41,789 bases of DNA from Octopus bimaculoides (Eukaryota), in the NCBI RefSeq assembly GCF_001194135.2, contig NC_068982.1:77390946-77432734 (forward strand), in the 5' to 3' direction. Of this stretch, positions 3,722-36,560 are shown piece by piece; the stretch's first letter is position 1; each line of letters opens with the position of its first letter. The notes below the pieces were generated by a model. That model saw only the letters and a program-made list of their open reading frames with translations, was not told the DNA's origin and did no database searches. The position numbers were made by a program, and so were the translations under genes.

Positions 3722-3910
3722 TAAGGCGAAGAGCATTTCGTCCGTCTTTATGTTCCGAGTTCAAATTCTGCCGAGGTCGACCTTGCTTTTCATCCTTTCG
3801 GAGTCGATAAATCAAATACCAGTGAAACACTGAGGTTGATGTAATCGGCTNNNNNNNNNNNNNNNNNCCCCCCGAAATTGCTGACCTTGTGCCTATAGTA
3901 GAAAGGATTT
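3721..3910 (+). mobile_element. Octopus-type tRNA-derived SINE fragment
   Basis: GTTCAAATTCTGCCGAGGTCGACCTTGCTTTTCATCCTTTCGG matches the full copy at 20173-20403. Confidence 0.8.
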
Positions 3911-4185: not shown

Positions 4186-5648
4186 CACTGTGATTTAGCT
4201 ATGGATACAACATCAAAAAGAAGGACGTATTGTTAAGAGCCCGATATCTTGTTACATCTGTGGCAGCTTCACTCCACAGGCTCAAGGGTACAACATTAAT
4301 AACTTTACCAAGAAGGTGCATCATACTAACAGTAAAGTAACACTTGGAAATCAGGACAAAACATGAGCTCCCCACAAACTTTGCAAAACCTGTGTTGAAA
4401 CTTGGTGTGGTGAAGCAATTCATCAAAGCTCTTTATCACAGTGGAAACTCCTTCAGATATATATGCACAACCTTTTCAAGTCTCAGGGACGAGAAGAAGG
4501 TAGGAATATTTGATGGACCTCAAATAAGAACACTCCTCGGGGATCCACATTTTGTTGCAATAATAAGTGCGGCAGAGGTTAGAGATTGGACTGCCTTCTC
4601 TGATGTGGTGCGGAATTTCCTCGGGAATGGGAAAGCTGACAGCTATCGCGAGATTGTGGAGGAGCTGCTCTTGACTTCGCAAGCACTTAGATGTAAAATG
4701 AGCATTAAATTGCACTACTCACACACAGGGCCCGCCTTGGGAGGTGCGGGACCCAACTGGGTGAGGTGAGGGGGGAATTTTTGAGGGTACACCCTACCCC
4801 ACCCCTTCGATTTCCGTGGAAAAAAATTATTTGCGGTATATTAAGAGATTAGATTATTTGATAGCACAAGANNNNNNNNNNAAAAAAAAAAAAAAAAAAC
4901 GAGGAAAAATATTATTTCCCACCAAAATTGAGTTGGGTGTTTATATAAATTTGTCAAAAATTTTCACCATCAATAAGCGAAACTACATTTAAATTACATT
5001 TTTAAAAAATATTCTGGCAAAAAATGAAAAGAAATTTAACAAGATCCCATAGAAACTTGTATCTGTTGCATGAAAAGCAAATTAATAATTAGAATTTTTC
5101 GGAAGCTGGTTATATACTTGCCTTATACTTTTTTCTATAACTTCTGTTGTAGAAAACAGTCCTGTCTGCCTGTTTCATAGCTGTATGGTTCTGGGTTTAG
5201 CACCACTGTATGACAGCAAATGTCTCCTACTATAGTTTCGCGCGCACGCGCGCGCGAATGTGTTTGTGCTTGTCCAAAAACCTAAATGTGAGTCATTGCA
5301 AAGAGATATTCTCTTTGAATCAAGGGACAAGAAATTTTATCTCACCTCCCCTTCTTTCTCTCTATTTATCTCTCTTTCTCACTGCACACACACACACACA
5401 CACACACACGCGTATGTATATGTATACAGTTCACCACACTAAAAAAATACATATACGTACAATCATACACATACAAGCAAAAACATACATACGCATACAT
5501 TGACACAAATACAAAGACTTCAACAAAATCACTATGAAAAATAATTGAACTTTTCACTTTTGTTTTGACAGAAATTTCTGTGGACAAAATATTGAGCACA
5601 TATTTAGCCTTTTGCATTTATCATTTTTGTTTTATTTTTTGCTTTCTT

Positions 5649-8039: not shown

Positions 8040-8380
8040 CCTATCTCAGCATGTAACCTTGGCATTTTGTTAACAGGGCTGATACGGGGTTCACTGCCAA
8101 TACAAACAATATCATAGATAAACTATCACCCAAGAATATGCCTGCTGATAGCTTAATTCTGTTGCTTTTGTTGTTGTCAGTGATAACTGGGTGGACCATG
8201 TTATGGCCAGTCTTTCAATGGTATTCACTATAGCAGCTGGTACTTTGTCAAGGTGTAGTAATTCTATCATCCATAAGTGAGGAACAGAGTCGAAAGCCTT
8301 CTTATAATCTAGCCATATTGTTAAGAGATTACTGTGATGTTGCTTGACTTCCTTAAGGACAGCTTTGTTGAGGAGGAGTC
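8040..8380 (-). mobile_element. R4/Dong-like non-LTR reverse transcriptase fragment
   Basis: WLDYKKAFDSVPHLWM and, after a frameshift, GIFLGDSLSMILFVLAVNP (GIFQGDSLSP-like). The 5' junction abuts the (TACA)n tract at 8381-8413. Confidence 0.8.
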
Positions 8381-8413
8381 GTATGTATGTATGTATATAT
8401 GTATGTATGTATG

Positions 8414-9062
8414 TTATCAATCAGTTTCATTTCTGTATTTCTTGTCAATAGAGAAAGAGCCGGACTCTAACATAGGATTCAAGGCTCCTTCATTGGAACT
8501 TTTATCAACATCATCTAGGTATTTGTGCATATGTGTGTGTGTGCAGTATTTGGTGTTAGTGTATGCGCAGATTTGTATGTTTGTTTTATGGATGCGTTTT
8601 TATGTATATATTTTCATGTCTAGATGCATGCATATGTATTTATGTGCTAAATTTTTGGAAAGTTTTACATATCTTTACAGTTCCATTGATGGCTTGAATC
8701 TGTAGTCTTCTAATCAGCCTTTTTCTTTCAGGTTTTGAGAACCCTAATTTTTCCAGGTTTTTATTGAGGCAGTTCGTTACATATCCCAATGCCCCAACAA
8801 TCACGGGTATGAATCTAAACTTGTAGTCTGGGTGGAGTATCTGCAAATTTCTCAGTAGCTCGGTGTAGTTGTTATTTTTTTCTCTAATCTTTAGTGTGAT
8901 GTTGACATCCGCAGGACAGCTGATTTCTACTACTGTACACAGTTTCTCTTCTCTGTCCCAGATTACTATATCCGGTCTATTATATCTGCATTTTATTGAG
9001 GTTGTTATTGGGACATTCCACCAATACTCTTTCATATTGTGAGTGATAATGGCATCTACCTC
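8414..9062 (-). mobile_element. 5'-truncated R4/Dong-like element: restriction-like endonuclease domain and 3' UTR
   Basis: NRPDIVIWDREEKLCTVVEISCP...K...Y...IPVIVGALG is the RPD..(D/E)..K RLE signature. Bounded on both sides by (TACA)n. Confidence 0.85.
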
Positions 9063-11989: not shown

Positions 11990-13070
11990 GTTAGAACTCA
12001 AAACAGAATACCACAACAAATATCGCAAGACATTTTACTCGACGCTCTAACGATTCTGCCAAATATTTATTTCTAATTTAGGTACAAAACCAATAATTTT
12101 TGAGAGGAGAAGTCGATTATTACGACCCCAGAACTTGACTGATACTTGATTTTATCGGTACCGAAACGACATAGTGCATAGTTGATTGCAGCGGGATTTG
12201 AACTCAGAGCATAAAGTGTCAGAACAAATACCGCAAATGATTTTGTCCCATGCTCTGGTTATTCTGCCAAATGATGATTTTATATGTCGGCACAAGGCCA
12301 GCAATTTTTGTGGGAGTGTAATAGTCATTTACATTGGCCCTAGTTCCTGATTGGTACTTTATTATATTGACCTCAAACGGATGCAAAAGCAAAGTTGAGC
12401 CAGAAAAAATGCCGCTAAGCATTTTGTCTGACGCACTAACGATTCTGCCGAATCACCGCCTTGACTCTGCCAAATAATCCTTTCTACTAAAGACACAAGG
12501 CCTGAAATTTTGGGGGAAGGGACTAGTCGATTAAATCGACCCCAGTGTTCCACTGGTACTTAATTTATCCACCCCGAAAGGATGAAAGGCAAAGTCGACC
12601 TCGGCGGAATTTGAACTCAGAATGTAACGGCAGACAAAATACCGCTACNNNNNNNNNNNNNNNNNNNNNNNNNNNNNNNNNNNNNNNNNNNNNNNNNNNN
12701 NNNNNNNNNNNNNNNNNNNNNNNNNNNNNNNNNNNNNNNNNNNNNNNNNNNNNNNNNNNNNNNNNNNNNNNNNNNNNNNNNNNNNNNNNNNNNNNNNNNN
12801 NNNNNNNNNNNTTTGTAAATTCTCACCACTAAGGATTTTTATTTCTTTATTGCCCACAAGGGGCTAAACATAGAGGGGACAGACAAAGGGATTAAGTCGA
12901 TTATATCGACCCCAGTGTGTAACTGGTACTTAATTTATCCACCCCGAAAGGATGAAAGGCAAAGTCGACCTCGGCGGAATTTGAACTCAGAATGTAACGG
13001 CAGACAAAATACCGCTACGCATTTCACTCGGCGCGCTAATGATTCTGCCAGCTCGCCACCTTAGACTCTG
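11990..13070 (-). repeat. Head-to-tail cluster of at least 5 same-orientation SINE copies
   Basis: Repeated order GTCGAT..GACCCCAG..GGTACT..GAACTCAG..GATTCTGCC at ~12050, 12260, 12445 and 13045; includes the gap 12649-12811. Confidence 0.75.
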
Positions 13071-18519: not shown

Positions 18520-19060
18520 AGGCCAGTTGTCGGATTCGGTTTGATTTCAGATTTCAAATTTCAAATTCCCTTGCCTCAACAGGTCTTCGCAAGCAGGGTT
18601 TTTAGGGCTTTAAAGATACGAATTAGTGAGCTGGCTACACTTCTGGCAGAGGTCACAGATTATGCTCTCACTTGCCTTGCCAGGTCTTTTCACGTACTGC
18701 ATATTTCCAAAGGTCCCAGTCACTGGTCATTGCCTCGGTGAGGCCTAAAGTTCAAAGTTTGTGCTTCACCACCTCATCCCAGGTCTTCCTGGGTCTACCT
18801 CTTCCACAGGTTCCCTCAACTGCTAGGGTGTGGCACTTTTTCACACAGCTATCCTCATCCATTCTTGCCACATGTCCATACCAGCACAATCGTCTCTCTT
18901 GCACACCACAACTGATGCTTCTTAGGTCTAACTTTTCTCTCAAGGTACTTACACTCTGTTGAGTATGCACACTGACATAACACATCCATCGGAGCATACT
19001 GGCTTCGTTTCTTGCAAGCTTACGCATGTCCTCAGCAGTCATGGCCCATGTTTCACCGCT
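18520..19060 (-). mobile_element. RTE LINE 3' fragment
   Basis: RNEASMLRWMC...ERRLCWYGHVARMDEDSCVKKC...EGTCGRGRPRKTWDEVV. Confidence 0.85.
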
Positions 19061-19624: not shown

Positions 19625-19790
19625 TGACGAGCTTCCACACAGTTTCCATCTACCAAATTCACTCACAAGACAACGATCAGCATGGGGCTTCAGTAGAAGA
19701 CTCTTGCCCAAGATGTTAGTCAGTGCAACTGAACTTGGGACCATGTGGTTGGCAGGCAAGCCTCTTAATGACACAGTCATGATTGTCCTA
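19625..19790 (-). mobile_element. SINE fragment, same family as 36201-36560
   Basis: Reverse complement of the GGTTCAGT..GCACCTTGGGCAAG..CTTCTAC..GATTTGGTAGATGGAAAC pattern. Confidence 0.6.
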
Positions 19791-23900: not shown

Positions 23901-25350
23901 TGGCAGTTCTTTCTGTCTGAAAATCATGAGGAAGAGCAGCTGCTTACATGTAGGGTTGGAACCGCAACTGCCAGTACTATCCAGTACCTGTCATTTTTGG
24001 CACTTCTCCATCACTGCAGGGCTTTTCTTCCTATTTGCACTTAGTAGTTTTAACCCTTTAGTATTCAGATTATTTTGTCAAGTGTAATGCTTATTTATTT
24101 ATGTTGATTTAAATAACTCATGCATTATCTTGTAGCTTTGAGATTTTGATGATGTTATTTATTTTTAGCATGGCATTGTAGGATTAATGTAAGAGGCTGG
24201 ATCCTGTCAGTTTGAATGTAAAACAGGTAGAATATTTGGGGCCGGATATGGCTGGTTTAAATGCCAAAGGGTTAAAGGGGATGAGAGAGTGGATACTTTC
24301 ATAAGAGTGTGAGGGGGAAATAAACAGGTGTAGGTAGAGTTTAATATGAGTGATGAACTAGAGTGGGGGTGCAGTTGAGAGGGAAATACCAATATGGAGA
24401 GGGGTGAGATGGGAAATATAGGAGTGACTTAAGAAGGGGAATAGATCAGATCAGAAAGAAGTTGAATTATGTACAAATAATAGAATAGATCAGAAAGAAG
24501 TGGGATTATGTGCAAATTGTAGGAGCAGTGGAAAAGGAGGCATAGAGATACATAAGGGGCTATAATAAGTACGATATGATGATAGATATAGAATTTTGAT
24601 AACTGTTCTTCTGCATGTGACATCATAGAGTATATGAATTAATCCTATTACAAGTTTACATATCTTTGTCTTTCTCTGAAAAAATTCTATGGGTTTACAT
24701 ACAGCCCACCCAGCAAGAGTATGTAGGGTCAATGACCAAAGAGTAATAAGTGCAATCTAGTTACTCTTTATCTCCCTGTGTGTCTGTTGATTCAGAGTCT
24801 GATATTTATGTTATTCCCTGTATTTTCCTTTTTCTTACATCTTTATTATCTTATCTTCTTTCTCTTTTTGTAGACCGAGTTATGTATACATATATAAGTA
24901 CATATTTAATGTTCCTGTTTAGATAATTCTATATAAGAATTATTGTTGTTTCAATATTTTAATCTATAAGTAAGTCAATAAGGACTCAAGTATTTCTGTT
25001 ATTTAAATTGCTGAAGGTAATAGATAAAAAATAAATAACCATTAAATATTTAGCTCCCTAGTCTAGATAATCATTATCTTGTCCATATATTGTTAAACTT
25101 AATGCCAAACTAAGTAACGTATTCTATTCTCTGTCTTTTTAATTTCCATTGTAATTCTTTCGTTCTTTCTATTTATTGTAGTATCTTCTTGTTGGAAGTT
25201 GACCATGTGCTCATTAGAAGAAATGAAACCAACCTTTTGAGATGGACATAATTTTTATATATCATCTTTAGTAAACAACAATTGAAATTGGTTTAAGCAT
25301 TGGAATATGAACTGAATTTTAAGGAAGGAGAATCTGGAAAATTGTTAAAA

Positions 25351-28300
25351 ATGTCAGAAAAGCGAAAACATTCTCATTTGGATTGTAAGATTCCCAGAAA
25401 AGTACCAAAAAAGGCTTCATTTAAAATCATTTCTAAACCAAGTTTGGAAGATATAATTCCCCATAAAGTAAGAAAAAAAACTTCAATTAAAACAATTACT
25501 AAAATTGTTTCAGAAAAACAAGGTTATAATCTATGGATTAATAATAAAATTGATCTGCGTAAAATATATTTAACAAATTTCCTTTGTGAGTTATTTGCTA
25601 TGAGAGATAATGTAAGTGATCCAGAGTTTCACAAGGAAGCTCTGGTGAAGATAAGCACAGTTATAAGGGAAATTGCCTCATGGAATTATACAAGTTTGCC
25701 AAAAACCATTTGGTACTTGAAGAAATTGAGCAAAATACATCATGGTTCAAACCCACCATTTCAAATGTTACATCACAAAGTAAAATTTCGACCAGTTCAA
25801 GAAATTACTACTCAGTTTGTGAATTTCAGCCTTCTTTCTGAACAGTTATCATTTATTAATATATCAAAGATTTTAATGCTTTATGATGTTGCTGTCATTT
25901 ATGACTCCTACAGCTTGTCTATAAATTACATTAATCAAGATGGACTTTGTGAAACTTACAATTTTAACTCTCCCATCACAGATATGACACAAGTGGGAGA
26001 GCATACTGTTATGGGAAGTCTTCCTTTCAGGAATAAAATCATCTTAATTCATCCTTTCAGTATGCAATTGATAAATCTTGACCATGGTTTTTATAAACTT
26101 TCCTATGTAGAAGGAACAAAATTTGTTGGTGTGAAGTTGTTTTCTAAAACAATTTACCTTGTGGACTGGATTCAAAGAGATATACATGCTTTATTTAACA
26201 TTAATCACTTCATTTCATCAATTGCTGTTGGACCTCGAAAATTTATTCTGGTGGCTTTCAGTGGCATTCCTTGTGTTACCTGTTATAATCTCCAGGGCAG
26301 AAAATTATTCCAGTTTGATTTTCCATTCAATGATAAACTGACAGAAATTGTAGCCAACCAAAAATATTTCTATTTCTTTGAAAACAATAATATTTTCAAG
26401 GTTTCAGAATTTGGTGGCATTTCTAAGAGAATAGTTGAAAGAACTCCTCAAAAGATTTATCTTCAACAAAACAATCTTGTTTTATTCAGTAATTTTAAAT
26501 ATCAAATTATCAGCCCTAATTTCTGGCCACAACAAACCTATTTTTCTCATAATCAAAGTCCAAGGTATCTCATCAGTCTAGATATTGAAAATGCATGTGA
26601 TATAAGGGCTGTAATACCAATATCAAGACATTGTTTTATAATTATTTATTTAAAAGATTTCATAAAGTTACTCATTTTTCGTGATGAAAACAAAATTATT
26701 GAACATTCTTTAACCCTGGAATCACCATTGATTGATGTCTCTCGATGGGCTGAGGACAAGATCATTGTTTCATTTGGCAGGAAATTCCAAAAGATCTCCT
26801 GGGACAATTATAATCTTGTTGCAACAAATATACAAGAGACTGCAAGTGAAATTTACATCCAAATTAGTCATATTATATCAGACAAATTTGTATGTTTAGT
26901 AGATGGACATAAAGCTCAACTACATATCATATGTGTGACAGAAAGTAAAATTGAACCTATCGAGTTTATAAATTTGGAACATGGAAATGTCTCCATTGCA
27001 GCCTCCCCACTCAATTTAATGGTAGTTGACAAAATGGATAAAAAACTTATGATTTTTTCTACTCACGGAGAACAATTATTTCAAATACAGCTTCCTGTGA
27101 TTGAACAGCCAAGGAAAGTGTATTCAGATATCCTTTATTTTTATGTAATTTCTAACAACAACTCAATTAGGACATACAATATATATGGACAGCTAAAGAG
27201 AGAGTGGAAAATTCCACGTCATTTTCTGCCAGTAATTGGTGTTCAGAAAGGGACAGTTACCATTGTGGACCCAATAAACAGTATACTTCATTGCTATAAA
27301 TTTCTTTGTGGTGATGGGTATCAAGTTCCAGTGAAGACTCTTAAAGACACCACAAGCACTGATATAATTTATGATGACCAAAATCAAACCAAAGCTATTA
27401 TTGGTTCTGTATGTCTTGTGCCCAATGGTCAGTTAGCTATTGCTGAGTGGGGAAAAAATAAATTGTTACTATGTTGCAAGAAAGGAAATATTAACCATCA
27501 GCTTAGTGTACCATCTCCAATTACTGATATCTGTCGATGGGATTGCAACAATTTAGGATTAACATTACCTCTTGAAAAGCAACTCTGGATTTTTGATTAT
27601 GTTTCAAATCATATTAGAGTAAGTTCCCTTGAACAGCCATATGTTCTCATACGTAAGTTAGATAATGACAGGGCTATTTGCTACTGTGACAAATCTAACT
27701 GTCTAGATATAGTTACAATAAAACTCACTAGTCAACAACCAACCAGACATTTAGCTATATGTCCCAGTTATATCAAATCTTTACATTTGTGGCACAACAA
27801 TATTCTGGCACTCACCAAAAGTCAATTGTTGGAATACAACACTTCTTTTTGTGGTTCTCCTACTATTTTATATCCCAAATTTGGTTCTGGAAGCTGTCTG
27901 TATGGTGTATGTTCTGACAAAACAGCCATATATTTAATTGATGACTCACAAATGTTTTCATTCAACGAAGAGACATTAATGGTTTGTGATTATGTGTCTT
28001 GCCAGCAGCTTAAATCTTTCATTGATCAACTTGATATCTTCTCTTGTACAGCAGTTGTTACTGATACATTATCATCTGTAGTACATCGTCAAGATTTATC
28101 AATGAGATTAAGTAAACATGTCTATCAAGTACCACATACTTATAAAGACACAAAGAGGATCATTATTTCAGCTCTGTTAATTACAGATAACAATTTAATA
28201 GCAATCTGTGATAAAAACAACTGCAGCGTAAAGATATTAACTTTTAAGGGTGAACTAATTGATACGCTGGATTTGAACTCATCACCTACAGGGATTTGTC

Positions 28301-30375
28301 ATTGTTTATCCAATAGTTTTGCTATTTCTACCAACACAGACAAACTGTTAACAGTTCAAGTTCAGTTTCCTTTAACTTATGTCAGCTTTAAGACATGTAA
28401 GAACTACAGATGCATCGCTTCATTCTCGGATGGACGTTTAGTATGTAGCTGGACAGACGATGGAAGCGATGGTCTAAGTATAGTTGATTTAAAATCATCT
28501 GTTTGTAAGGAAAAGCACATAAATGGTTGGAATGAAATAAGGAGGAAAACTATTCATGATATGACAGTTACTCCCAGTGATGAAATAGTGGTTCACTGTT
28601 ATGATGAAGATGATACTTTTAGTGAAGTAATATTTTTAAATATCCATGGTCAAATCACAAAGCAAGTAACTCCTCTTAATATGTCCCTGCCTGTTAGTAT
28701 CACTAGTGATAAACTTTATATTTACATAATAACAAGTCAACCAATTGACTACTATTACAGGGTCACACGTTTGTCGATGGATGGCAAATATCACAGCATG
28801 TTTCTTCATCCGCATGAGTTAATTGATGAATCAGTGTTAACTGCTATGAACTGTCGGGGACCACGATTTGTTATGGTCAACAGTTGCAATAATCTCTATA
28901 CAGAAGGACTGTTGACTCTTGATAGAGAAATACTTTCATTATCTCATCTCCAATGTGATAACTTCCCAGTACAAGTGAAAGATTTTGATGTATCTGAGAG
29001 AGGTCAGATTGTTATCTATGACAGAAAGAATGACATTGTTAAATGTTTTAGAAGTGGTGGATTGTTTTTGTGTCACAAGCAAATTAATTTCATAGTGGGA
29101 GGTTTATGTTTCATTGAGACAGGGAATATTCTAATCACTGTGCCCCAGATAAGAGAAATACAGGAGTTGAGTAAAAAAACTTTAAGTGTTAAGAGGGTAT
29201 TTAATACTGAAATACCGTATTGTAAAATACACCGAAAAATCCACAATCTTTATTGGTGTCTGGATTTAGAATCAACTGAATGTCATCTTGTTAAAATAGA
29301 AAATAATAACACTATTGTAATTATTGAGAAAATTCTGCTTATCCAACATCCTGGATATCAGTTTTGGTTCAATTCTGAAGAAGAAACAAATAGATTTAAC
29401 CAAGAAGGGAAATTGCGAAATAGTCAAGGTTTGTACATTCAAGCTATAAAAAGATCCAGAAATTGTAACAAGAGATTGCTAAAACAAGCTGGTGATTATA
29501 TTGCAAGTTGTAGAGAGGGATCAAATATTGTAGCAGTAAGGAAATTGCCATGGAGAAAGGAAATTGTTTGTATTCCTCATTTAGTAGATAAAACTTTAGA
29601 AACCTCTCACTATGGAGCACATTTTCTTCTTCTGGACAACAATAAAATGGTTGTAAGTTATAATGACAATGTAATAGTAGTAAGAACTAAAGAAACAGCA
29701 ATGGCAACATCTGAAAATTTACACAAATTCAAAACTGATGCTGAAGTTAGTAACCTTTGTCAATGGAAGCAGGAGAGTCTTGTTTTTTGTCTCCCTTCAG
29801 AAAAACAATTTGTATTTTATAATTCTGATTTCTCTTTACAGAAAAGAATATGTACAGACAAAAGCTATGAGTATATTGGCAAAACCAGCAATAATTGCTT
29901 GGTATGTTGTAGAGGGGGTGGAGTAAAAAGGTTAGGGAGAAGTGAGATATATAGTGGTGCCTGTATAGATATATTGCTCATTGAAGATAGCACTTATGTT
30001 TACAAGAGTCAGAATGATATAACTGATGGTATTATATATGATATAGCTGTGATGTTAGATGGTGACGTTGTGGTGAGTGGAGAATTTGAAGGTAAAGATT
30101 CAGTTTGTTGGTTCAACCATGATATCATCAAGATAATAGTAGTACCTGTAATTGGAAATCCAAAACGAATCACAGCCTTTGGACAGTATGCTTACTACTT
30201 TGACTGGTATGGTATTATATATCGTGTCTCCATTGATGGTGATTGCCAGAGATATATCACTACAGACAACAGAGAAATTATTACAGTTCATGATTTACAT
30301 GCCTCAGATTTCAGTTTGATTTTGTTTGGACAATTTGTTGAAAGTGATAGTGCTATCTGCTTTTACCAAATATGA
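25351..30375 (+). CDS. Single-exon ~1674-aa protein: basic N-terminal region plus six tandem NHL-like/6-bladed beta-propeller units
   Basis: 5-kb stop-free frame in ~31% GC DNA. There is an in-frame TAA at 25294-25296, so the first ATG (AAAAATG, A at -3) at 25351 is the likely start rather than the TTG at 25300. A motif series recurs every ~220-270 aa: SPITDMTQV (~25969), SPLIDVSRW (26722), SPITDICRW (27514), SPTGICHC (28282), IVGGLCFI (~29092), EVSNLCQW (29743). Unit 4 (IISALLITDNNLIAICDKNNCSVKILTFKGELIDTLDLNSSPTGIC) resembles mollusc TRIM/NHL propeller blades. ORF reality is high confidence; the fold is inferred. Confidence 0.88.
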   Translation: MSEKRKHSHLDCKIPRKVPKKASFKIISKPSLEDIIPHKVRKKTSIKTITKIVSEKQGYNLWINNKIDLRKIYLTNFLCELFAMRDNVSDPEFHKEALVKISTVIREIASWNYTSLPKTIWYLKKLSKIHHGSNPPFQMLHHKVKFRPVQEITTQFVNFSLLSEQLSFINISKILMLYDVAVIYDSYSLSINYINQDGLCETYNFNSPITDMTQVGEHTVMGSLPFRNKIILIHPFSMQLINLDHGFYKLSYVEGTKFVGVKLFSKTIYLVDWIQRDIHALFNINHFISSIAVGPRKFILVAFSGIPCVTCYNLQGRKLFQFDFPFNDKLTEIVANQKYFYFFENNNIFKVSEFGGISKRIVERTPQKIYLQQNNLVLFSNFKYQIISPNFWPQQTYFSHNQSPRYLISLDIENACDIRAVIPISRHCFIIIYLKDFIKLLIFRDENKIIEHSLTLESPLIDVSRWAEDKIIVSFGRKFQKISWDNYNLVATNIQETASEIYIQISHIISDKFVCLVDGHKAQLHIICVTESKIEPIEFINLEHGNVSIAASPLNLMVVDKMDKKLMIFSTHGEQLFQIQLPVIEQPRKVYSDILYFYVISNNNSIRTYNIYGQLKREWKIPRHFLPVIGVQKGTVTIVDPINSILHCYKFLCGDGYQVPVKTLKDTTSTDIIYDDQNQTKAIIGSVCLVPNGQLAIAEWGKNKLLLCCKKGNINHQLSVPSPITDICRWDCNNLGLTLPLEKQLWIFDYVSNHIRVSSLEQPYVLIRKLDNDRAICYCDKSNCLDIVTIKLTSQQPTRHLAICPSYIKSLHLWHNNILALTKSQLLEYNTSFCGSPTILYPKFGSGSCLYGVCSDKTAIYLIDDSQMFSFNEETLMVCDYVSCQQLKSFIDQLDIFSCTAVVTDTLSSVVHRQDLSMRLSKHVYQVPHTYKDTKRIIISALLITDNNLIAICDKNNCSVKILTFKGELIDTLDLNSSPTGICHCLSNSFAISTNTDKLLTVQVQFPLTYVSFKTCKNYRCIASFSDGRLVCSWTDDGSDGLSIVDLKSSVCKEKHINGWNEIRRKTIHDMTVTPSDEIVVHCYDEDDTFSEVIFLNIHGQITKQVTPLNMSLPVSITSDKLYIYIITSQPIDYYYRVTRLSMDGKYHSMFLHPHELIDESVLTAMNCRGPRFVMVNSCNNLYTEGLLTLDREILSLSHLQCDNFPVQVKDFDVSERGQIVIYDRKNDIVKCFRSGGLFLCHKQINFIVGGLCFIETGNILITVPQIREIQELSKKTLSVKRVFNTEIPYCKIHRKIHNLYWCLDLESTECHLVKIENNNTIVIIEKILLIQHPGYQFWFNSEEETNRFNQEGKLRNSQGLYIQAIKRSRNCNKRLLKQAGDYIASCREGSNIVAVRKLPWRKEIVCIPHLVDKTLETSHYGAHFLLLDNNKMVVSYNDNVIVVRTKETAMATSENLHKFKTDAEVSNLCQWKQESLVFCLPSEKQFVFYNSDFSLQKRICTDKSYEYIGKTSNNCLVCCRGGGVKRLGRSEIYSGACIDILLIEDSTYVYKSQNDITDGIIYDIAVMLDGDVVVSGEFEGKDSVCWFNHDIIKIIVVPVIGNPKRITAFGQYAYYFDWYGIIYRVSIDGDCQRYITTDNREIITVHDLHASDFSLILFGQFVESDSAICFYQI

Positions 30376-30679: not shown

Positions 30680-31624
30680 CCGTGTTTCCCTGAAAATAAG
30701 CCCTACCATGATTTTTCAGGATGTTTTTAATATAAGCCCTACCCCAAAAATAAGATACAGTCAAAAATGCATCAGCAAGGCCATGTGATGTTTGCAAAGT
30801 AAGCGAACTAGTGCAGCTTGGCTAAAGTCTGTACTAAGCATGCATGCACGGAGTTGACTCCCTTGTCCCCCCCCCCCGACAAGATGAGTGCAAAAAGAAA
30901 GAGTTATTCCATGGAGTACAAGAAAAGAATTGTGGTAGAATCACATAACAAGAATCTTACGGCTTTGTGTAAAGAGATGATGTTGGATCTCTGAATAGTT
31001 CGAAAATGGTGAGCAGAGTACAATAATCTCAACCGACAGGTAGATGATGGAAGTGCTAAGAAGTGTGGATCAGGTCGACAACCATTATTTTTGGAGCTGG
31101 TAGATATCACCCTGGGATGGATTACTGACAGAAGAACAAAGGCTTTGGTTGTACATAGGGTTGATATTCAAGAATTTGCTCTTGCAATGGTACCACAGTT
31201 GGATATACCCCCAGATAGTCGCATTGCCAATGCACTACAAGCAAGGTACTTGGACAAAAAGTGTTCATTTAAGGAAAGTTATATTACCAAACATGAGAGA
31301 TTGGGGTCCATGATTTTACAAGAAGTGGATTTGCAAGAAATTCAGTCTGAAGTTCAGGGTTTGATGATTTATGACTATGTTCCAGAAGAGGACAAAATGT
31401 TTCTATTTGACTAAAAACAATAAGCAAATAAATAAACTTTTGATAACTAAAAACATGGGTATCCTTTTTACAATTTTTTCCTTTTACACGAGGACATGAA
31501 ACTTTTTTGTCTTTCTTGGATTTTTTCCGCAAAAATATAAGACATCCCCGCAAAAATAAGCCCTAGTGCATTTTTTGGATGCAAAATTATTATAAGACCA
31601 GATCTTATTTTTGGAGAAACATGG
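30680..31624 (+). mobile_element. Internally deleted pogo/Tigger-type DNA transposon
   Basis: TA|CCGTGTTTCCCTGAAAATAAG...CTTATTTTTGGAGAAACATGG|TA. Encodes KRKSYSMEYKKRIV and LELVDITLGWITDRRTKALVVHRVDIQEFA (CENP-B-type HTH); no DDE domain remains. Confidence 0.85.
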
Positions 31625-31900: not shown

Positions 31901-33136
31901 TGCGGGCAAAAAATAATGTCCTCACTGCCCCACTCAGGTAAAGTGTACAGGTTAAGGAGTGAAATGCTCATGATTCTGAAATACCTGCTGATGATATGGA
32001 AGAGTTTCTGACATTGTGATTGATTTAGGAGAAGAGCTTGCCATTACATCTGAGTAACCCAGTAGTTTCTGCACGGGGCAAAACATCTCCAATATTTGTT
32101 TCACCAGTGGTTGCCATGAAAGCCTTTAGAGATTGTAAGTCTTTAACATCTGTAGACAATCCAATTGGCTTTAGGTGTAATAAGAACTAAGTGTTTTCTT
32201 GTTACTATATATTGTCTGTTTTGGTGCCAGTGAACATAACTAGGTTACCATATCTCCATTGTTGGCCAATTTTTGAGTCTCTGTTCACACAGTATACACA
32301 CCTACTGAAAAGTGTTGAATTTTTGTATGGATAAGGGCTGAGAAAGAGAGGGAGTATTCTATGGTTTTGTTAACAAAGTGTATGAAGTTAGAGATGAATG
32401 TCACTAGGGCAATTAAATATCAGAGAGATAATTAACATATTGGGTGGATGTGATGAGGGCAATTAAATGTAATATAGATAATTAACCCATAATGTACACT
32501 CAAATTGATAGAGGGAATGTTGGAGGTTGTTCCATTGATATATGCTATGATGAGACATAAGGACATGACTAGAAACTTCTGATCCTTTGTTATTACAGTC
32601 AAGTAATCAAAATGAAGTGTAATGTGGGTGAAGTTCTATGATTCATATAAAGAAAAACCTGACATTTAATGATTGAAAACCTATTGTATCAGTGCCAACT
32701 ATTAAGATTCTGGTATATGGAGTTTATCATAGGCAAATTTAACCAAGTTATGATCACTGCAACCATTTAAGGAGTTACCTCCACAATCTTGAGGGCCTGT
32801 TTTAAAGCAAACACTATGAAAAAAAGGAGGATCCTCTGAGAAAGCTCTTTTATTTATTAACAACGCAACTTTTAATTAATGTCCCTTCTCTTCAATTATT
32901 TGTTGTTTTAAAAAAAGGAACTAGAAAATGTGCCTGCTTATTTATTCCATTATCACTTTTGGTACTAACCCTTCTGAGGCACTCCTGGTTCTGTGATACA
33001 AATTTCCTATTATAAAATGACCTTAATTAAAACATTCCATCAAAATTTCTTTTTCATTCATGTTTTATTTTCAGGTGTATCTAACTGTCTTACCTGGATG
33101 TTAAAATAATAAGGATGATGATGATGTATGTATGTA

Positions 33137-33960
33137 TCTGGACAAGACTGTTGTAATGTTCCAGCCTGAACAAGGAAATCCATATGTGGAACCAGCTATC
33201 TTGGTTGAAGGAACAATTCTGAAAGTGGTAGATACCTTTGTCTATCTGGGCAGCACACTCAGCCGTTCTTGCTCCCTGGATGGTGAAATATCTTTCAGGC
33301 TGCAGAGAGCAACTGATTCCTTCCGGTCTCTTCAGTCTCGTGTTTGGTCCCAGCATGGCATCACAAGGCAAACAAAAATTGCTGTGTACCGTGCTTGTGT
33401 ACTAACATCGCTCCTCTACTCGTGTGAAACATGGACTCTGTACAAATGTCAGGTAAGGGTCCTTGAACGCTTTCATCAAAGATGTCTCAGACACATTCTG
33501 AATGTTGGCTGGACCTTAAAAACTCCAGACACACAGGTCCTGAGGACAGCTGATATCTTGAGTACTGAGGTGATGTGCATAAGCACCGGTTACATTGGAG
33601 TGGATACCTTATTAGAATGAAAGATAGCAAGATCCCCAAACAGATGCTATATGGGGATCTTGTGAATGGAAAGAGACCCCGGCAGAAACCAAGGCTCTGA
33701 TTTAAGGACTGTGTCAAGTCCTCATTAAAGGCCTGGGCGAACAATGTATGTCATTGCCACAGATGGAGGAAGCAGTTTAAGGAGGGGGTTGACACTTTTG
33801 AGAGAGCACGTATTCAGCATGGAGAACTTAAGTGTGCTGCTCAAAAGCACACTGCTGGTGTAGTGAATGGGGAAAGCTTGGTCTGCAATGTTTGCAGTCA
33901 TGTATGCTTGTCAAGAGCAGGGCTCATTAGCCACCAACAGAACTGCAAATGCAAAATATA
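33137..33960 (+). mobile_element. 5'-truncated RTE/BovB-type LINE
   Basis: KTVVMFQP...LKVVDTFVYLGSTLS...TKIAVYRACVLTSLLYSCETWTLY...LERFHQRCLRHIL, then KIPKQMLYGDL. The 5' junction lies in a (GAT)n/(TATG)n tract. Confidence 0.88.
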
Positions 33961-35081
33961 AGTTAGTCCTAGAGCACACAATGTCCCTGAAGGTCAGCAA
34001 TGGTCTTCCTCGGTCACAAGTGGATGGCCATCATCATGTATTCTTTTTCTCTTTTTAATTTAGAGTTAATCTTGACTGGCCACCTGCTTAGTAGCAAGGT
34101 TGTAAAGAAAGACATCTTATTTTGTTCTTCATCCTTTAAATCTTAAGAAAGTCTTGCAGATTTTTATTGTTCTAGATATCATGATATTTTGAAGCATATA
34201 AATCAAAGAGTTGCATTCTCTCCCAAAGAACAAGTTCAGCCATACTTTGATCAGTTGGTTGGCACATAGCTAATGATAATATTGTGTGTGTGTGTGTTTT
34301 GTGTGTATCCTTGTCTAGCCATCATATGATGGTTCTAAATGAACATCATCATACAAGTGAGGATGTTTGTTTCTTGTCTTCTGTGAAAAACATGTCTGAC
34401 CAAAGGGAAATATTACCATACTTGAAAACAGGAGAGTGTTGGTGACAGGAAGGGTGACCAGCTGTAAAAAATTACATCTGATGCATACAAACATGGAAAA
34501 GTGAATGTTAAATAATAATCATCAACATCATATCAAGTTTTGTCAAATGAAATAAAACCTACAGACCTGTCAAAATGTAATTGAATAGCAATTAAGAGCA
34601 TCATGTTGTCATGCATGCACACCCACACACATGTTCAGAGATAACACCAATATTTCAAATGTTGACTCATTCTGATATTAAATATCGTTAGGATATCTAT
34701 CCTAGATCATTGAAAATTTTTGTTGTAATTTTGTGACCTGGGAAGACTTACATTTAACTCTTGAGAAGTAATGTATTTATTTGAGTAATGTGTAAAATCC
34801 CAAATATAAAAAAGCAAAAATATTTTGTGGGTATACTGTCATGCACACTCACACACACACACACATATATATAATTATACATATATAAACAATAAATTAA
34901 ATAAATTGTTAAATAAGTTGTTAGATTGTCAGCTGAATCTCTCAGTTAATTTATTGTTTGTAATTTGTATTATACCCCTATTTCTGTGGCATTTAACTGA
35001 CGTACCAGTGAACTGGATGTTTTACACACCCCTTTGAAGGAATTTCTTTCCTTAGTTTGTTACTTATATATATATATATAT

Positions 35082-35580
35082 NNNNNNNNNNNNNNNNNNN
35101 NNNNNNNNNNNNNNNNNNNNNNNNNNNNNNNNNNNNNNNNNNNNNNNNNNNNNNNNNNNNNNNNNNNNNNNNNNNNNNNNNNNNNNNNNNNNNNNNNNNN
35201 NNNNNNNNNNNNNNNNNNNNNNNNNNNNNNNNNNNNNNNNNNNNNNNNNNNNNNNNNNNNNNNNNNNNNNNNNNNNNNNNNNNNNNNNNNNNNNNNNNNN
35301 NNNNNNNNNNNNNNNNNNNNNNNNNNNNNNNNNNNNNNNNNNNNNNNNNNNNNNNNNNNNNNNNNNNNNNNNNNNNNNNNNNNNNNNNNNNNNNNNNNNN
35401 NNNNNNNNNNNNNNNNNNNNNNNNNNNNNNNNNNNNNNNNNNNNNNNNNNNNNNNNNNNNNNNNNNNNNNNNNNNNNNNNNNNNNNNNNNNNNNNNNNNN
35501 NNNNNNNNNNNNNNNNNNNNNNNNNNNNNNNNNNNNNNNNNNNNNNNNNNNNNNNNNNNNNNNNNNNNNNNNNNNNNNNN
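35082..35580. other. Assembly gap (others at 298-307, 1966-1975, 3851-3866, 4872-4880, 12649-12811)
   Basis: N runs. Confidence 0.99.
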
Positions 35581-35619
35581 GGACCAGCATCCTGTGACTT
35601 GGGAAAGCCCTTTGATTTT

Positions 35620-35656
<37 letters not shown>

Positions 35657-36102
35657 ATACAAAAATAAGAGGAATGACCAGCAAAAGTGGACTCCTATAT
35701 GCTAGAAATAGATGCCGAATCATCTAACCACGAAAAAAATTATATGTTCTCAGTAAAAATTCAGCGACACAACAGACTGTAAAAGGGCAAGACAGATGAA
35801 AAAATACTAAATAAAAAAAACGATTAACCTACGTACCATGGTTTCACCTGTTAAAATTTACATAAGTAAATATCTGCATATTTACTTATCCTGCAGATAT
35901 TTACTTATGTAAATTTTAACATGGTACGTAGGTTAATCGTTTTTTTATTTAGTATTTTTTCATTTGTCTTGCCCTTTTACAGTCTGTTGTGTCGCTGAAT
36001 TTTTACTGAGAACATATAATTTTTTTCGTGGTTAGATGATTCAGCATCTATTTCTAGCATATAGGAGTCCACTTTTGCTGGTCATTCCTCTTATTTTTGT
36101 AT
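35657..36102. repeat. Near-perfect 446-bp palindrome (foldback)
   Basis: Arms of ~210-220 bp, from ATACAAAAATAAGAGG to CCTCTTATTTTTGTAT. I see 2 substitutions and one 10-nt indel, with a 13-nt loop TATTTACTTATCC. Confidence 0.92.
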
Positions 36103-36200
36103 GTAATATAATTTTAATCTTCAGATTTTTTTAATATGCTAGACCACTGGTTCTAATTGATTAATATCAATTTCTACCCTCATAAATAAATTATATATAA

Positions 36201-36560
36201 GTGCAGGCATTGTTGTCTGGCTAGAAGTTTACTTCCCAATCACATGATTCTGGACTCAGTCCCACTGCACCTTGGGTAAGCATCTTCTACTATGGCCTCA
36301 GGCCAACCAAAACCTTGTGAGTAGATTTGGTAGATGGAAACTTGTGTCCTTGTGTCTGTGTTTGTCACCATCACTTGACAACCAGTGTTGGTGTGTTTAT
36401 GTTTCCATAACTTAGTGGTTTGGCAAAAGTGACCAATAGATTAAGTACCAGGCTCTAAAAAAAAGTACTGCGATTGTTTCATTTGACTAGAAATTCTTCC
36501 AGGTGGTGCCCCATCATGGTCGTAGTCTAATGACTGAAACAAGTATAAAAGATAGAAAAA
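36201..36560 (+). mobile_element. Diverged Octopus tRNA-derived SINE (third family)
   Basis: GCAGGCATTGTTGT..GACTCAGTCCCACTGCACCTTGGG..GATTTGGTAG..ATGACTGAAACAAGT, A-rich tail. Confidence 0.65.

Follow-up and report, generated by a model that had tools for sequence, protein, structure and literature searches.

A constrained octopod gene predicted to encode six tandem NHL-type propeller modules, one of them reduced

What kind of protein is specified by a long, uninterrupted reading frame that matches no named gene? The question is raised by a 41,789-nucleotide stretch of the Octopus bimaculoides genome (assembly GCF_001194135.2, contig NC_068982.1, positions 77,390,946 to 77,432,734 of the forward strand), referred to throughout as the window. 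A single open reading frame (ORF) stands out in it, extending from 25300 to 30375 on the plus strand and comprising 1674 codons when counted from the first ATG at 25351. The predicted product of 1674 residues has a mass of ∼193 kDa. An earlier note, made from the sequence letters alone, had described this ORF as intronless and as encoding six tandem, NHL-like β-propellers. As outlined below, the locus holds a genuine protein-coding gene, single-exon and under selective constraint, and the sixfold repeat is confirmed.

The closest database protein, a "hypothetical predicted protein" from Octopus vulgaris (P0001), is 94% identical across 99% of its length, and a second ortholog (P0002), taken from an assembly of a public read set, is 85% identical. 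The ORF lies in DNA with a G+C content of 30-34% and is intact in three species. At the nucleotide level the coding sequence (CDS) is 96.7% identical to that of O. vulgaris with no gaps in 5025 nucleotides, whereas identity in the flanks is 89-90%, with 34-181 gap positions. These flanks are collinear with those of O. vulgaris, and the locus is therefore orthologous. Ratios of nonsynonymous to synonymous substitution rates (dN/dS), calculated by the Nei-Gojobori method, are 0.46 for the window versus O. vulgaris, 0.49 for the window versus contig L001 from a more distant species, and 0.44 for L001 versus O. vulgaris, with Fisher p-values from 7e-6 to 8e-14. The comparison between octopus species proposed in the earlier note thus yields values that are not near 1. 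Constraint is uneven along the chain: the N-terminal region is nearly neutral (0.75-0.90), an insert in the fifth unit reaches ∼1.1, and most propeller values fall in the range of 0.2-0.6, unit 6 being the most constrained of all (0.21-0.37). The term intronless applies to the CDS, because the O. vulgaris ortholog is annotated as one single-exon CDS of 4989 nucleotides and the closest paralog is likewise one contiguous block. Upstream of the start codon, a polypyrimidine tract followed by AG at ∼25181 may be a splice acceptor within the 5'-untranslated region (5'-UTR).

Six tandem, deeply diverged units, each of ∼215-270 residues, make up most of the protein. Their starts, as defined with profile hidden Markov models (HMMs), are at residues 169, 414, 680, 935, 1204, and 1419, corresponding to nucleotides 25855, 26590, 27388, 28153, 28960, and 29605, and agree to within a few bases with those first proposed by eye. 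The three motif series on which that proposal was built, the third of them clear in five units, share columns in a MAFFT alignment of all six units, the third motif being absent from unit 5. A whole-protein BLASTP self-comparison returns the identity match alone, off-diagonal matches being culled, and unit-by-unit tests were used instead. Smith-Waterman z-values, each a unit-pair score compared with those of 100 shuffles, are 9.2 for units 1 and 2, 7.3 for units 2 and 3, 6.8 for units 3 and 6, 6.2 for units 4 and 6, and 4.4 for units 3 and 4; unit 5, with z ≤2.9, is marginal in this test. In a leave-one-position-out test, which is both stricter and more sensitive, a profile built from five unit positions of six family members (the window protein and five paralogs) was compared with the omitted position. 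Every position is recovered, with E-values from 1e-7 to 6e-26. For unit 5 of the window protein the value is 9.5e-16, and the match is restricted to the first ∼125 residues (∼1217-1330). The ORF list, the alignment, the shuffle tests, and the left-out profiles together bear out the six tandem homologous units within one intronless ORF of 1674 codons, and the internal repeat is significant at all six positions. The features of the gene are as follows.

25351-30375, plus strand: complete, intron-free CDS of 1674 codons and a stop codon, as given by the ORF list and translation.
25120-25182, plus strand: polypyrimidine tract with a terminal AG (∼25181), a candidate splice acceptor of the 5'-UTR, as read from the sequence.
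25351-25854, plus strand, residues 1-168: N-terminal non-propeller region with a pI of 10, a net charge of +17, a 22-residue tandem duplication, and a KFRP motif.
25855-26589, plus strand, residues 169-413: propeller unit 1, recovered over nearly its full length in the leave-one-position-out test (E 1.9e-12) and aligning with the other units; fold assigned by homology.
26590-27387, plus strand, residues 414-679: propeller unit 2, leave-one-position-out E 1e-17, z 9.2 versus unit 1 and 7.3 versus unit 3; fold assigned by homology.
27388-28152, plus strand, residues 680-934: propeller unit 3, with a six-bladed AlphaFold2 model and NHL matches in Foldseek.
28153-28959, plus strand, residues 935-1203: propeller unit 4, with a six-bladed model, leave-one-position-out E 2.5e-18, and a weak Pfam NHL match at residues 945-962.
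28960-29604, plus strand, residues 1204-1418: reduced unit 5, with three recognizable blades, an insert, and one more modeled blade.
29344-29472, plus strand, residues 1332-1374: insert of unit 5, charged, predicted to be disordered or helical, with local model confidence of 25-35 and dN/dS ∼1.1.
29605-30372, plus strand, residues 1419-1674: propeller unit 6, with a six-bladed model, leave-one-position-out E 2.2e-20, and dN/dS 0.21-0.37.

The fold of the units was addressed by AlphaFold2 modeling. With the other units and the units of paralogs as alignment input, unit 3 gives an all-β model with a predicted local distance difference test score (pLDDT) of 83 and a predicted template-modeling score (pTM) of 0.83. 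Its 24 strands form six four-stranded blades. The best superposition found by Foldseek in the Protein Data Bank (PDB) is with the NHL domain of TRIM2 (7b2r), with template-modeling (TM) scores of 0.70/0.65 and a root-mean-square deviation of 4.2 Å, and the model also superimposes on Pizza6, an NHL-derived designer protein (0.70/0.71), and on the NHL domain of Drosophila Thin (0.67). Units 4-6 were covered by another model, based on 14 family sequences, with a mean pLDDT of 73. Within it unit 4 is modeled with 24 strands, its block lying mostly at pLDDT 80-90, and unit 6 with 25. Unit 5 is distinctly different. It comprises 12 strands arranged as three blades (pLDDT 70-91), the 43-residue insert (pLDDT 25-35), and four further strands (pLDDT 55-70). 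If a closed six-bladed propeller is taken to consist of four-stranded blades of ∼40-45 residues each, then the models of units 3, 4, and 6 conform, the fold of units 1 and 2 is taken from homology only, and unit 5, with ∼four blades, falls short. The protein is thus predicted to consist of five full six-bladed propellers, two of them placed by homology, and one reduced module of ∼four blades. Accordingly, the NHL-type propeller fold proposed earlier is upheld by the AlphaFold2 models and the Foldseek matches, whereas the count of six propellers must be qualified for unit 5 with its ∼four blades and disordered insert. The description "propeller-only" likewise stands in part: RING, B-box, and other Pfam domains are indeed absent, but ∼168 basic N-terminal residues lie outside any propeller.

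Searches with the whole protein against Pfam and against PDB sequences give only sub-threshold hints of NHL and TRIM71. With the unit profile, an exhaustive HMMER search of 1.84 billion representative proteins returned 343 at E ≤1e-3; a word-indexed homology search with it returned a single protein. The best matches outside the family align over ∼200 C-terminal residues, carry an N-terminal RING and B-box, and show weak NHL repeats in the aligned stretch. E-values are 1e-17 to 1e-9 for cephalopod RING/B-box/NHL proteins and 1e-17 to 1e-5 for the NHL-bearing proteins of the library in general. Sepia (Acanthosepion) pharaonis contributes P0025 (6e-17) and P0030 (2e-13). The former is a bona fide TRIM-NHL protein: its RING matches TRIM2 and TRIM3, its RING, B-box, and coiled-coil (RBCC) region is matched by TRIM28, and at the C-terminus the match is to the NHL domains of TRIM2 and TRIM3 (∼2e-11), all of these chain matches lying between 1e-14 and 1e-11. 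Among the 103 non-family hits scanned with Pfam, NHL is present in 56, B-box in 25, RING in ∼16, and WD40 in 4; the top families do not include Ldl_recept_b. Against natural PDB chains the unit profile yields 2e-5 for the TRIM2 NHL domain, 1e-4 for TRIM3, 0.013 for Thin, and 0.04 for Brat, with VPS16 and WDR36 also among the matches. These profile matches support, on sequence grounds, a relationship of the units to TRIM-NHL propellers by homology, beyond fold alone, as the earlier note had suggested. On fold and profile homology together, membership in the NHL-type propeller superfamily is supported, although the Pfam NHL threshold is not reached. Several large non-octopod hits with multiple matching stretches (P0028, P0031, P0045, and others) were set aside; the named ones are metagenomic or cyanobacterial WD40 or STAND NTPase proteins, and their matches are generic to propellers.

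The octopus protein is not itself a TRIM-NHL member. TRIM2, TRIM3, TRIM32, TRIM71/LIN-41, Brat, and Thin, along with Sepia P0025 and P0030, contain the same six-bladed type of propeller and are the nearest relatives outside the family. They combine a RING, a B-box, and a coiled coil with a single C-terminal propeller, whereas the octopus protein has none of these N-terminal modules and has six units. Neither the window protein nor five full-length paralogs contain a RING, B-box, or other Pfam domain above threshold.

The window protein is not a singleton but part of an octopod multigene family. In the exhaustive profile search, six-unit relatives were seen in octopods only, namely three Octopus species and Argonauta, and none was found in squids, cuttlefish, or other animals, cuttlefish proteins being in the library. 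All hits at E <1e-30 are octopod except P0018, a 6267-residue protein from a 131-kb ENA contig. Family loci include LOC106873529 and LOC106880634 of O. bimaculoides, LOC115216371, LOC118768184, LOC118768537, and others of Octopus sinensis, and members in O. vulgaris and Argonauta hians; a single 29.19-Mb chromosome of O. vulgaris carries several of the models from that species. The named members are all annotated as "uncharacterized" or "hypothetical," as is the full-length O. vulgaris ortholog, in keeping with the earlier statement that no named gene matches. Within the library searched, no paper names the paralog loci or the sequencing run, and none describes tandem NHL propellers for cephalopods. 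The octopod paralogs (LOC106873529, LOC106880634, LOC115216371, and Ahia01_000013500) share the plan of an N-terminal region followed by six units, with a reduced unit 5 and no Pfam domains. Their identity to the window protein is only 27-33%, however, and among the branches sampled that of the window gene and its orthologs is the most divergent. The same plan, with 150-240 non-repeat N-terminal residues ahead of the six units, recurs in full-length members left out of profile building, and unit 5 is matched over its first half only in all paralogs examined.

The history of the repeat can be read from a comparison of all 36 units of six family members with one another. In every case (36/36) the nearest neighbor of a unit is the unit at the same position in another paralog, and same-position scores between paralogs are higher than the best score within a protein by a factor of 4-10. 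Both the amplification to six units and the reduction of unit 5 are therefore older than the family radiation and than the split between Octopus and Argonauta.

The N-terminal region has no Pfam match. Its 22-residue tandem duplication (residues 11-32 and 33-54, window positions 25381-25512) reads DCKIPRKVPKKASFKIISKPSL / EDIIPHKVRKKTSIKTITKIVS and could be a bipartite signal resembling those for nuclear localization. The region is poorly kept among paralogs except for the KFRP motif immediately before unit 1, and the position of the start codon varies between the gene models of the three species. As a remnant of a TRIM coiled coil it was rejected, the hhalign probability versus the RBCC region of TRIM-like hits being 0.1%. 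No hydrophobic N-terminus, signal peptide, or membrane segment is present in the window protein, and the N-termini of paralogs are alike. The net charges of units 1-6 are +3, -2, +1, -7, +9, and -10, much of the positive charge of unit 5 residing in its insert.

What, then, might such a protein do? The reading favored here, with a probability of roughly 0.55, is that of a constrained octopod gene whose six NHL-type modules form an intracellular platform with six different ligand-binding propellers. NHL-class propellers are ligand-binding modules, and in the nearest relatives, which are RING E3 ligases, they are the end that recognizes substrate or RNA. Because it lacks a signal peptide, a membrane segment, and a catalytic domain, the protein is probably located inside the cell. 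The separate preservation of the six positions makes a platform with non-equivalent propellers the most likely arrangement, in which each propeller would bind a different ligand rather than offering one of six equivalent sites. The ligands would more likely be proteins than RNA, and the role could be that of an adaptor or decoy in ubiquitin-ligase pathways. Protein ligands and such a role are favored because the propellers are not generally basic, because the best matches are TRIM2 and TRIM3 and not the RNA binders Brat and TRIM71, and because gene models of the closest paralog join MIB2-like ankyrin-RING exons to it. The outgroup proteins nearest to the units are RING E3 ligases. The basic N-terminus and the insert of unit 5 may contribute nuclear targeting or non-specific contacts with nucleic acids.

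Several observations weigh against this reading. The Pfam NHL family (PF01436) scores only 9.7 bits on the protein (E 1.2) versus a cut-off of 20 bits, and the top PDB matches of the unit profile are designed WD40-like repeats (WRAP-T), which arise from summed weak repeat matches; part of the signal is therefore generic to propellers. The model of units 4-6 has a pTM of 0.54, such that the arrangement of its domains is uncertain, and the fold of unit 5 within it is of moderate confidence only. The gene-wide dN/dS of ∼0.45 is rather relaxed. The functional part of the reading is one that we infer. With respect to ubiquitin ligases, the MIB2-like fusion involves a paralog with a broken ORF, one of the two fused models (P0179) is plainly chimeric with an AGC-kinase tail, and the MIB2-like ankyrin and RING exons were not found in the window or at the orthologous O. 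vulgaris locus. The fusion is accordingly taken as a weak lead.

In the fused models themselves, P0022 and P0179 of O. vulgaris, MIB2-like ankyrin and RING exons are joined to copies of the closest paralog at the same point (...DDHYMQIPRFDC). One linking exon is present in O. sinensis, ∼8 kb upstream of the paralog (L004, 1992-2039).

Could the propellers bind RNA instead? NHL-type propellers of Brat, LIN-41/TRIM71, and Mei-P26 do so. The protein might accordingly be a multivalent regulator in which the top face of each propeller binds a short RNA motif and the six together read combinations of motifs or cluster mRNAs. Such a role is suggested by the homology of the units with TRIM-NHL propellers, several of which are established RNA binders, by the strongly basic N-terminus, and by the basic insert of unit 5. 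It is countered by the overall neutral or acidic character of four of the six units and by the closest structural and sequence matches, which are to TRIM2 and TRIM3, with Brat and TRIM71 scoring weaker. It is the best placed of the alternatives and, like the sensor proposal that follows, a live one, though unlikely.

Next in order, and likewise improbable, is a fast-evolving, lineage-specific family of innate-immune or genome-defense sensors, whose propellers would recognize products of pathogens or transposons. This proposal is compatible with the scaffold reading and places the emphasis on an arms race. The restriction of the family to octopods, its many paralogs, several of them on one O. 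vulgaris chromosome, and the relaxed constraint on the gene are in its favor. The broken ORF of the closest paralog in two species suggests birth-and-death turnover, and TRIM-type E3 ligases, to which the units are related, are used in antiviral defense in many animals. Against this stand the six positions, stable since before the Octopus/Argonauta split and thus not suggestive of rapid diversification, and the dN/dS values, which for no unit are consistently above 1.

A bolder extension, which we regard as speculative and improbable, is that these proteins constitute an octopod-specific class of giant intracellular recognition proteins. In it a TRIM-NHL propeller would have been detached from its RING and B-box, amplified six times, and its copies specialized, so as to read combinations of RNA or protein ligands and deliver them to RING ligases encoded elsewhere, such as those of the MIB2-like genes that neighbor some paralogs. 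The result would be a split, multivalent TRIM-NHL system acting in octopod RNA regulation or in defense against viruses or transposons.

That the units belong to another class of propeller, such as WD40, YWTD/LDL-receptor class B, or SGL, and are not of the NHL type, is highly improbable. The idea draws on the sub-threshold Pfam NHL score, on the WRAP-T, VPS16, and WDR36 matches, and on Foldseek E-values for unit 3 that are alike for many propeller classes. The models, however, are six-bladed, while WD40 propellers usually have seven blades, and no Pfam WD40 match is present in the protein. The top TM-scores are those of the TRIM2 and Thin NHL domains and of NHL-derived Pizza6, the best natural matches are RING/B-box/NHL proteins, and the natural hits favor NHL over WD40 by 56 to 4 among the 103 scanned, with Ldl_recept_b outside the top families.

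Least credible of all is a decaying retrocopy, transposon-borne ORF, or annotation artifact in place of a functional host gene: the intronless CDS lies amid transposon debris and assembly gaps, the closest paralog is disrupted, and contig L001 looks genomic and not transcript-derived, but the 5-kb ORF is intact in three species at dN/dS 0.44-0.49 (p ≤7e-6) with zero indels between gapped flanks at an orthologous, collinear locus, no terminal repeats bracketing it were found, a tblastn search of a phage collection gave no match and thus no backing for a phage or viral origin, and Pfam detects no transposase or reverse-transcriptase domain in the 1674-residue protein.

How does the favored intracellular platform compare with other proteins built from several propellers? 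LRP1, LRP2/megalin, LRP4, LRP5, and LRP6 likewise carry several six-bladed propellers, of the YWTD type, on one chain and serve as multi-ligand platforms. They are extracellular, however, and have a signal peptide, a membrane anchor, and EGF and LDL-A modules that separate the propellers. The octopus protein has none of these features; Pfam finds no EGF, LDL-A, or Ldl_recept_b match in it, and the sequence class of the LRP blades differs from that of the octopus units. DDB1, CPSF160, and SF3B3 are intracellular, consist almost wholly of propellers, and act as adaptor platforms in ubiquitin-ligase or RNA-processing complexes. Their three interdigitated propellers are seven-bladed and WD40-like, with no sequence relation to the octopus units and TM-scores of ∼0.2. 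A Foldseek search with the three-unit model lists megalin/LRP2 and LRP4, both among its top matches, along with DDB1, IFT-A, and UTP proteins, at global TM-scores of only 0.2-0.3. The octopus protein is thus neither an LRP/YWTD receptor nor a WD40 protein, and represents a new architecture built from a known fold.

Cephalopod lineage-specific gene families are well known, but few have a structural interpretation. A set of ∼190-kDa "uncharacterized" octopod proteins can now be described as NHL-type propeller arrays that appear to derive from the TRIM-NHL lineage. Six propellers on one probably intracellular chain, with no catalytic or zinc-finger module, are rare for animals, and conservation position by position suggests that the six differ in what they bind. 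Both this layout and its confinement to octopods are out of the ordinary and well supported. The family would provide a natural example of a single-propeller recognition module turned into a multivalent platform. By itself the finding does not settle any long-standing question.

Some family members show features of their own. The closest paralog (P0003/P0004, ∼31-33% identity) is a contiguous six-unit block in both O. vulgaris (L003, 14574-19423, from OX597817.1) and O. sinensis (L004, 10034-14807, from VCDQ01005691.1), and its frame is broken in both. The O. vulgaris copy has an in-frame stop at L003 17946-17948 and a frameshift near 18809, and the O. sinensis copy shifts frame near L004 12808-12894; the gene models bypass these breaks with annotated "introns." Either a likely pseudogene or an assembly error is at hand. 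The Argonauta hians members P0011 and P0156 are longer (1913-1925 residues), with an N-terminal tandem repeat of an ADNTRMV-type heptad and bigger spacers around units 5 and 6.

With respect to its surroundings, the window is 30-40% G+C and eukaryotic in character, with microsatellites, gaps in the assembly, and pieces of transposons. An insertion of ∼940 bp (30680-31619) that resembles a miniature inverted-repeat transposable element (MITE) lies in the 3' flank of the gene. Its ends show a TA target-site duplication and imperfect terminal inverted repeats, TACCGTGTTTCCCTGAAAATAAG / reverse-complemented TACCATGTTTCTCCAAAAATAAG. It is present in O. vulgaris (L002) and absent from the more distant species (L001). 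The corresponding 940-bp gap of L001 versus the window was considered as an intron and rejected, since it is the TA-flanked MITE-like insertion and not a GT-AG interval. Contig L001 (7.2 kb) was also rejected as evidence of expression; it includes the putative intronic acceptor region and ends in repeats.

Runs of N mark assembly gaps at 298-307, 1966-1975, 3851-3867, 4872-4881, 12649-12811, and 35082-35580, and the long "ORFs" at 34993-35668 are artifacts of the last of these. Retrotransposon debris at 8112-8420 on the minus strand gives a weak reverse-transcriptase match (RVT_1, E 3e-4); two further segments, 33132-33620 on the plus strand and 18752-19042 on the minus strand, look by eye to be reverse-transcriptase-derived fragments and have no match in a Pfam scan. 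An inverted repeat of 61 nucleotides, 98% complementary, with arms at 35759-35819 and 35940-36000 that are 120 nucleotides apart, adjoins an assembly gap. Finally, a short dispersed repeat resembling a short interspersed nuclear element is present at 36192-36304 on the minus strand, at 19684-19767 on the plus strand, and at positions 1-118 of L001, where, at the 5' end of that contig, it coincides with the point at which collinearity with the window stops.

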